This document shows, piece by piece, positions 18,147-18,557 of a stretch of DNA of 64,000 nucleotides. Within the stretch, counting starts at the first letter, position 1; each line of letters starts with the position of its first letter. The notes beneath the pieces are model-generated. The model saw nothing but the letters and a program-made list of their open reading frames with translations. It did no database searches and was not told where the DNA came from. The DNA is from Gracilinanus agilis (taxonomy: Eukaryota): NCBI RefSeq assembly GCF_016433145.1, contig NC_058133.1, positions 246,571,896 to 246,635,895 on the forward strand, written 5' to 3'. A program made the translations under genes and the position numbers.

Positions 18147-18557
18147 TTAAGCCCTCTCTCCGCGGATGCGGCGAGCCAGCTGGATGTCTTTGGGCATGAT
18201 AGTCACCCGCTTGGCATGGATGGCGCACAGATTCGTGTCCTCGAATAGTCCCACAAGATAGGATTCACTGGCCTCTTGCAAGGCCATCACAGCCGAGCTC
18301 TGGAAGCGGAGGTCGGTCTTGAAGTCCTGGGCGATCTCGCGGACCAGCCGCTGGAAGGGCAGTTTGCGAATCAGCAGCTCCGTGGACTTCTGGTAGCGCC
18401 GGATCTCTCTCAGAGCCACAGTGCCGGGTCTGTAGCGGTGAGGTTTCTTTACGCCGCCTGTAGCCGGAGCGCTCTTTCGAGCAGCCTTGGTAGCCAACTG
18501 TTTGCGAGGTGCTTTCCCGCCAGTGGACTTACGAGCTGTTTGTTTAGTACGAGCCAT
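18147..18557 (-). CDS. H3-4: Histone H3, replication-dependent; H3.2 backbone with A98S (H3.4/H3t-like), copy 1
   Basis: Intronless 136-codon H3 reading ...[10 protein letters not shown] (S96, S98), with a 3' stem-loop. Position and strand match human H3-4 relative to TRIM11. Symbol is tentative, based on synteny plus S98. Confidence 0.95.

Follow-up and report, generated by a model that had tools for sequence, protein, structure and literature searches.

Histone Genes at the TRIM11 Locus

The window, that is, the whole stretch of 64,000 nucleotides of Gracilinanus agilis DNA that was analysed, contains seven histone genes. They are an H3 gene, here called H3a, and six more, among which the H2A, H2B, H4, and H1 classes are represented (Table 1). 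H3a was read as a single unbroken open reading frame of 136 amino acids from the list of open reading frames and its translation. The second H3 gene, H3b, lies 33 kb from H3a and 41 kb from the first exon of TRIM11. A tblastn search of the window returned no further H3 genes or fragments beyond H3a and H3b.

Table 1. Position of the histone genes, their signals, and the TRIM11 exons in the window.
Feature	Position	Strand	Remarks
TRIM11 exon 2	3627-3881	−	Located by alignment
TRIM11 exon 1 (RING, B-box)	9816-10223	−	7.9 kb from H3a, same orientation
Histone mRNA 3′ stem-loop of H3a	18082-18126	−	Rfam RF00032 (Histone3), 40.4 bits, E 1.9e-08, gathering score 34
Stem-loop core of H3a, GGCTCTTTTAAGAGCC	18106-18121	−	One mismatch to the consensus, loop TTTA
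H3a	18147-18557	−	Intronless coding sequence, 136 codons plus stop, H3.2 with A98S
Codon 98 of H3a	18261-18263	−	TCC, Ser; Ala (GCN) in canonical H3.1/H3.2; direct reading
Promoter elements of H3a	18619-18689	−	CCAAT at 18685-18689 and 18644-18648, TATAAATA at 18619-18626; putative function
H4	32914-33225	−	
H1	ends at 36866	+	
H2A	37438-37830	−	Divergent pair with H2B
H2B	38184-38564	+	Divergent pair with H2A
H3b (second H3 gene)	51744-52154	+	Same protein as H3a, Ser98 included; old paralogue
Stem-loop core of H3b, GGCTCTTTTCAGAGCC	52181-52196	+	Canonical
Second H2A	55489-55881	+	

A pattern search that allowed two mismatches to the consensus found a stem-loop at six of the seven histone genes, where 0.09 would be expected by chance. 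The H4 gene is followed by a variant stem-loop, GGCCCTTTTTAGGGCC, at 32847-32862 (−) and then by a purine-rich element; this variant is below the Rfam gathering threshold and outside the two-mismatch pattern search. The loop TTTA replaces the usual TTTC in three stem-loops of the window, namely, those of H3a, H1 (36907-36922, +), and H2B (38622-38637, +).

The two H2A genes are 98.5% identical and differ in two residues, Ser/Thr at position 16 and Gly/Pro near the C-terminus. In the eutherian HIST3 H2A (H2AW), position 16 is Ser, so that the divergent H2A/H2B pair at 37.4-38.6 kb could be a candidate counterpart of H2AC25/H2BC26. The H2B coding sequence is broken by an N gap at 38233-38441. 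Between the genes, the long open reading frames at 20269-21363 (−) and 43718-44676 (+) were judged from their translations to be LINE-1 ORF2-like endonuclease/reverse-transcriptase fragments.

The assignment of the neighbouring exon to TRIM11 relies on protein matches. Its best named match is TRIM11 of Phyllostomus discolor, with 77% identity over 100% of the query; the matches form a block at 76-81% and then drop to 62% or less, the TRIM17-like proteins being at 55%. No second RING/B-box exon was detected in the window by tblastn, and therefore no TRIM17 stands between TRIM11 and H3a. Because TRIM11 adjoins it in the same orientation, H3a is the positional counterpart of eutherian H3-4. A preliminary description of this DNA, made from the letters alone, had linked the gene to testis H3.4/H3t; by position, such a link holds and is in agreement with the published work described below.

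Sequence and Anatomy of the H3a Gene

H3a had been described as H3.2 altered at residue 98 only, with a TCC codon at that place, and the open reading frame and codons, read directly, show this to be exact. Residues 96-98 are S96-E97-S98, encoded by AGT GAA TCC. The same direct reading confirms that the four other positions said to be canonical are so, with A24 (GCT), R42 (AGA), V71 (GTC), and A111 (GCC). In comparison with the mouse H3.1, H3.2, and H3.3 reference rows, 135 of the 136 residues are those of H3.2, and identity to mouse H3.2 is incomplete by the one difference A98S. The gene also has the H3.2-type residues S96 (C96 in H3.1) and A31, S87, V89, and M90, unlike the H3.3 set. In this sense, the term “minimal form” is appropriate, as H3a is H3.2 plus A98S alone.

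The exact H3a protein is on record with the Pfam domain PF00125. The solved structures that match it are, in descending order, H3.2 (280.6 bits), H3.1, mouse H3t (5b1l, 276.8 bits), and human H3.1t (3a6n, 275.5 bits). Among the matches listed, none scores above H3.2, which itself differs from H3a at residue 98.

The coding sequence is intact and intronless and bears the signs of strong purifying selection. Judged by its stem-loop, promoter boxes, and histone neighbours, H3a is a real gene and not a chance open reading frame. A purine-rich element, recognized by eye at about 18082-18094 (−), lies downstream of the stem-loop core and could be a binding site for U7 snRNA. Upstream, alignment shows that the CCAAT-CCAAT-TATA layout is common to H3a and H3b.

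H3b also has the codons AGT GAA TCC. The two coding sequences differ at 40 nucleotides, all of them synonymous (pS 0.39, dS 0.55, dN 0). Synonymous differences are found at codons 95 and 99, on either side of codon 98; for this reason the common Ser98 does not come from a recent conversion tract, and recent gene conversion is ruled out as its source in both genes. The list of open reading frames starts H3b 14 codons early, at an upstream in-frame ATG (51702-51743, +). The TATAAATG box ends in this ATG, which should therefore precede the transcription start and not be used.

That codon 98 reflects an error of assembly or sequencing is hardly conceivable. H3b has the same codon, Ser98 is also present in the orthologues of four other marsupials, and one sequencing run, possibly from the source sample, holds 88% of the sampled words of the stretch. 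On the agreement of two paralogues and four other species, a sequencing error at this codon is rejected.

Marsupial Orthologues and the Histone Proto-Cluster

Komarov et al. 2026 (Nat Commun 17:7212, PMC13396413) sought marsupial orthologues of H3-4 by using TRIM linkage as an anchor, and the TRIM11-linked “H3.2” genes of the grey short-tailed opossum, Tasmanian devil, koala, and wombat were reported as putative H3-4 orthologs. In their Supplementary Data 1, the proteins of all four genes are the H3a protein, Ser98 included. The main text of that paper makes no mention of Ser98 in marsupials; the gene is named H3.2, and V24 and C96 are treated as early eutherian changes. In the published tree, the marsupial TRIM11-linked genes form a clade of their own, apart from eutherian H3-4. 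The locus and the protein sequence of H3a are thus already public through this work (PMC13396413).

A comparison by eye of H3a with the printed Monodelphis domestica coding sequence gave about 32 silent differences and no replacement. The M. domestica gene also carries TCC at codon 98. H3a and this gene share, for example, Leu20 TTG, Thr32 ACA, Arg42 AGA, and Ala95 GCC, which are not found in H3b. Because these codon choices are common to the first two only, H3a is orthologous to the M. domestica gene and H3b is an older paralogue.

The opossum TRIM11 locus lies within a histone proto-cluster that spans about 0.6 Mb and has ZFP and BTN genes on its flanks, and eutherian HIST1 and HIST3 are considered to derive from a large proto-cluster of this marsupial type (PMC13396413). 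The same source bears on the distribution of Ser98 among marsupial H3 genes. In the Tasmanian devil, two H3 paralogues of the BTN1A1-linked cluster have A98, whereas the wombat has an extra, unlinked copy with S98. Three further full-length H3.2 genes of M. domestica, situated in other clusters, have an identity of 0.9926 to the TRIM11-linked gene, which corresponds to one different residue, presumably A98.

These data are relevant to the idea that S98 is simply the canonical H3 of the main histone cluster of the species, common among replication-dependent H3 genes of marsupials and in no particular relation to TRIM11 or H3.4. Both H3 genes of the window carry S98, one of them being 41 kb from TRIM11 exon 1, an unlinked S98 copy exists in the wombat, and the marsupial TRIM11 cluster is a large proto-cluster and not a small HIST3 (PMC13396413). 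The idea is nevertheless improbable in view of the presumed A98 of the three M. domestica genes and the A98 of the Tasmanian devil paralogues, two H3 genes of the present genome being in view. The preliminary description had proposed that its interpretation would fail if S98 were common in marsupial HIST1/HIST2 H3 genes. This turned out to be true in part: H3b, which is not adjacent to TRIM11, and the unlinked wombat copy carry S98.

Ser98 in Histone H3 outside Mammals

The exact H3.2-A98S protein is recorded on 36 contigs. Among the ten matches listed, all the places that encode it are non-mammalian. It is encoded in the histone clusters of Geothlypis trichas, the axolotl, and Liolophura japonica (a chiton, in several copies), as well as in those of Octopus bimaculoides, O. 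vulgaris, and GCA_036365525.1. These genes mostly have stem-loops, and their Ser codons differ (TCT, TCG, and TCC). A98S is therefore a recurrent and tolerated change in H3 genes of the replication type.

In Geothlypis trichas (GCA_009764595.1, locus 10001-11268), an S98 and an A98 H3 gene are arranged tail to tail, 450 bp apart, and both forms therefore coexist in one non-mammalian cluster. The stem-loop of the S98 gene of this bird has the TTTA variant, as do those of H3a, H1, and H2B in the window.

Residue 98 across Mammals

Among the eutherian H3.4 coding genes of Supplementary Data 1 of PMC13396413, 36 have S98 and 26 have A98. The strings around residue 98 give matching counts: there are 35 ACESYL rows, to which the degu is added, and 27 ACEAYL rows, the H3.1 reference being one of them. 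All 35 ACESYL rows are placed elsewhere in the table, and therefore its carnivore and artiodactyl parts, to the extent that the table was available, hold no S98 of that form.

In the available part of the table, S98 is found in H3-4 of all catarrhines and of the tree shrew; among rodents in squirrels, mole rats, caviomorphs (pseudogenes included), and most muroids; and elsewhere in the armadillo and the greater horseshoe bat. Within primates, it is limited there to catarrhines. The same part of the table gives A98 for the galago, three lemurs, the tarsier, and two New World monkey pseudogenes; for the golden hamster, a jerboa pseudogene, the pika, and the rabbit; for bovids, equids, the dog, cat, and pig pseudogenes, and the hedgehog; and for the sloth, tenrec, and elephant. 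Both afrotherians and both lagomorphs that it contains thus have A98.

Ancestral states were reconstructed by likelihood under a two-state Markov (Mk) model on a hand-built timetree whose node ages were taken from general knowledge. The 16 settings under which the model was run combined the inclusion or omission of pseudogenes and of a canonical A98 outgroup, equal or unequal rates, and a flat or stationary root prior. Being a simple two-state model, it cannot represent biased conversion from canonical A98 genes, which would inflate the S-to-A losses and hide an S98 ancestor. With this reservation, the probability of S98 was 0.00-0.09 for the placental ancestor in all 16 settings, 0.09 or less for Boreoeutheria, and 0.11 or less for Primates, as against 0.82-0.91 for Rodentia and 0.94-0.96 for crown marsupials; at the therian node it was 0.24-0.46. 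Fitch parsimony required 7-8 changes, and the therian root was ambiguous when no canonical-H3 outgroup was added.

Eutherian S98 is best read as the outcome of about five independent gains, and the Ser98 of marsupials and that of eutherians are most likely convergent. It had been proposed that S98 is the oldest of the changes that define H3.4 and predates the marsupial-eutherian split. This proposal is unsupported, given the low values for the placental ancestor, the intermediate ones for the therian node, and the wide occurrence of A98.

In the corresponding scenario, S98 would have a single origin, in the H3 gene linked to TRIM11 in the therian ancestor, marsupials having kept the minimal form and eutherians having added V24 and C96 and lost S98 many times. 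Such a history would accommodate the presence of S98 in the TRIM11-linked genes of all five sampled marsupials and in eutherians of three superorders. The table of PMC13396413 describes the blind mole rat orthologue as “H3 with A24 and S98” and so treats S98 as a mark of H3.4. Losses would be easy, since S98A is neutral in the mouse; gene conversion from canonical A98 genes would supply a mechanism for them, and the parsimony result at the therian root is ambiguous. A single origin is nonetheless unlikely. It is at odds with the low Mk probabilities that every setting gave for the ancestors of placentals, boreoeutherians, and primates; with A98 in strepsirrhines, the tarsier, platyrrhine pseudogenes, afrotherians, and lagomorphs of the available part of the table; with the independent A98S of a bird, a salamander, and molluscs; and with the separate position of the marsupial genes in the published tree.

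Functional Meaning of Ser98

The effect of this residue has been studied in the mouse and in vitro. In mouse H3f4, the S98A substitution, in contrast to V24A and H42R, leaves testis weight, sperm count, and histology unaffected, even when the other allele is null, and the promotion of spermatogenesis is attributed to V24 and H42 rather than to S98 (PMC13396413). With hNap1, nucleosomes form from human H3.1(A98S) and from the wild type at equal efficiency (Tachiwana et al. 2008). Experiments in effect equivalent to the nucleosome reconstitution with A98S that had been suggested already exist for the H3.1 and H3.4 backgrounds, and they showed no effect.

On the whole, H3a is probably a functional replication-dependent H3 gene, orthologous to the marsupial TRIM11-linked “H3.2”, with a convergent Ser98 of little functional effect. 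Under this interpretation, the gene would be transcribed in S phase into an mRNA that is processed at its stem-loop through SLBP and the U7 snRNP, in place of polyadenylation. The protein would then be deposited as canonical H3.2. A98S, located in helix α2 of the histone fold, would have been fixed in the TRIM11-proximal H3 of marsupials for about the age of the crown group. Residue 98 would be a tolerant site, with repeated Ala/Ser flips in H3-4 and in the H3 of distant animals, and Ser98 alone would have little or no functional effect.

The persistence of Ser98 for about 80 My in marsupials, in two paralogues and at dN = 0, is compatible with selection for Ser no less than with tolerance. 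Repeated selection of Ser98 in the TRIM11-linked H3, through independent gains connected with use in the therian male germline, is very doubtful. If true, it would mean selected independent gains in marsupials, rodents, catarrhines, the tree shrew, a bat, and the armadillo. The S98 genes of opossums would then already be germline-biased, and an H3.4-like specialization would have preceded V24 and C96.

A related possibility is that S98 marks a germline-biased H3 of marsupials, the TRIM11-proximal genes being already enriched in the testis and H3.4-like specialization being pre-eutherian. It gains from the positional orthology of H3a to H3-4 and from the retention of Ser98 in two paralogues at dN = 0. 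It remains quite unlikely, as the promoter and 3′ end of H3a are those of an ordinary replication-dependent H3, with the layout seen in H3b, and V24, which together with H42, and unlike S98, promotes spermatogenesis in the mouse (PMC13396413), is absent.

Significance of the Marsupial Gene

Mouse spermatogenesis requires H3.4, the origin of which was not addressed before 2026. The window confirms the published TRIM11-linked marsupial counterpart of H3-4 in a further opossum species. It also draws attention to a detail that the text of PMC13396413 passes over, namely, that A98S sets the marsupial “H3.2” orthologue apart from true H3.2. This form seems to have become fixed at about the time of the crown-marsupial ancestor and has been duplicated. 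The marsupial S98 could have moved the date of one signature residue of H3.4 back beyond the therian split; instead, the way in which residue 98 is distributed in the published data favours repeated independent gains at a tolerant site. The practical value of the finding is small and consists of a warning that S98 should not be taken as diagnostic of H3.4 and a hint to consider germline expression in opossums.

Comparison with Known Histone H3 Genes

The non-mammalian H3.2-A98S genes encode the same protein as H3a but belong to unrelated lineages, in which the substitution is independent. Canonical replication-dependent H3.2 genes resemble H3a in being intronless, in their location in a histone cluster, in the stem-loop 3′ end, and in S96, A31, S87, V89, and M90; the difference is Ala instead of Ser at residue 98.

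Eutherian H3.4 (H3t; H3-4/H3f4) and H3a both adjoin TRIM11 and are genes of the replication type. The Ser98 of H3a is common to human, mouse, rodent, catarrhine, armadillo, and horseshoe bat H3.4. The residues that the preliminary description had given for human H3.4 (V24, M71, S98, and V111) and for mouse H3t (V24, H42, and S98) are correct according to PMC13396413 and Tachiwana et al. 2008. Compared with these proteins, H3a has Ala24 (GCT) in place of V24, by which H3.4 orthologues are distinguished; it lacks Cys96, encoded by all eutherian H3-4 orthologues (PMC13396413), and has Ser96 (AGT); and it is also without the M71 and V111 of human H3.4 and the H42 of muroids. A24 and S96 rule out H3a as an H3.4 by sequence. 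On the basis of its residues and position, H3a is regarded as a positional orthologue of H3-4 that is not H3.4 by sequence. The surroundings differ as well, since eutherian H3-4 belongs to the small HIST3 cluster (one H2A, two H2B, RNF187 flank), whereas H3a is part of a large cluster. The gene set of the window, with H4, H1, two H2A, one H2B, and a second H3, is unlike that of HIST3.

The opossum gene table of Komarov et al. 2026 (PMC13396413) has no entry for H3b, an intact S98 paralogue. Among known genes, the marsupial TRIM11-linked “H3.2” (e.g., M. domestica ENSMODG00000038443) has the same 136-amino acid protein as H3a, Ser98 included, and the two share the order <TRIM11 <H3 without TRIM17 and a histone cluster of five classes. 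The M. domestica gene differs from H3a in belonging to another opossum species and in the silent differences counted above.
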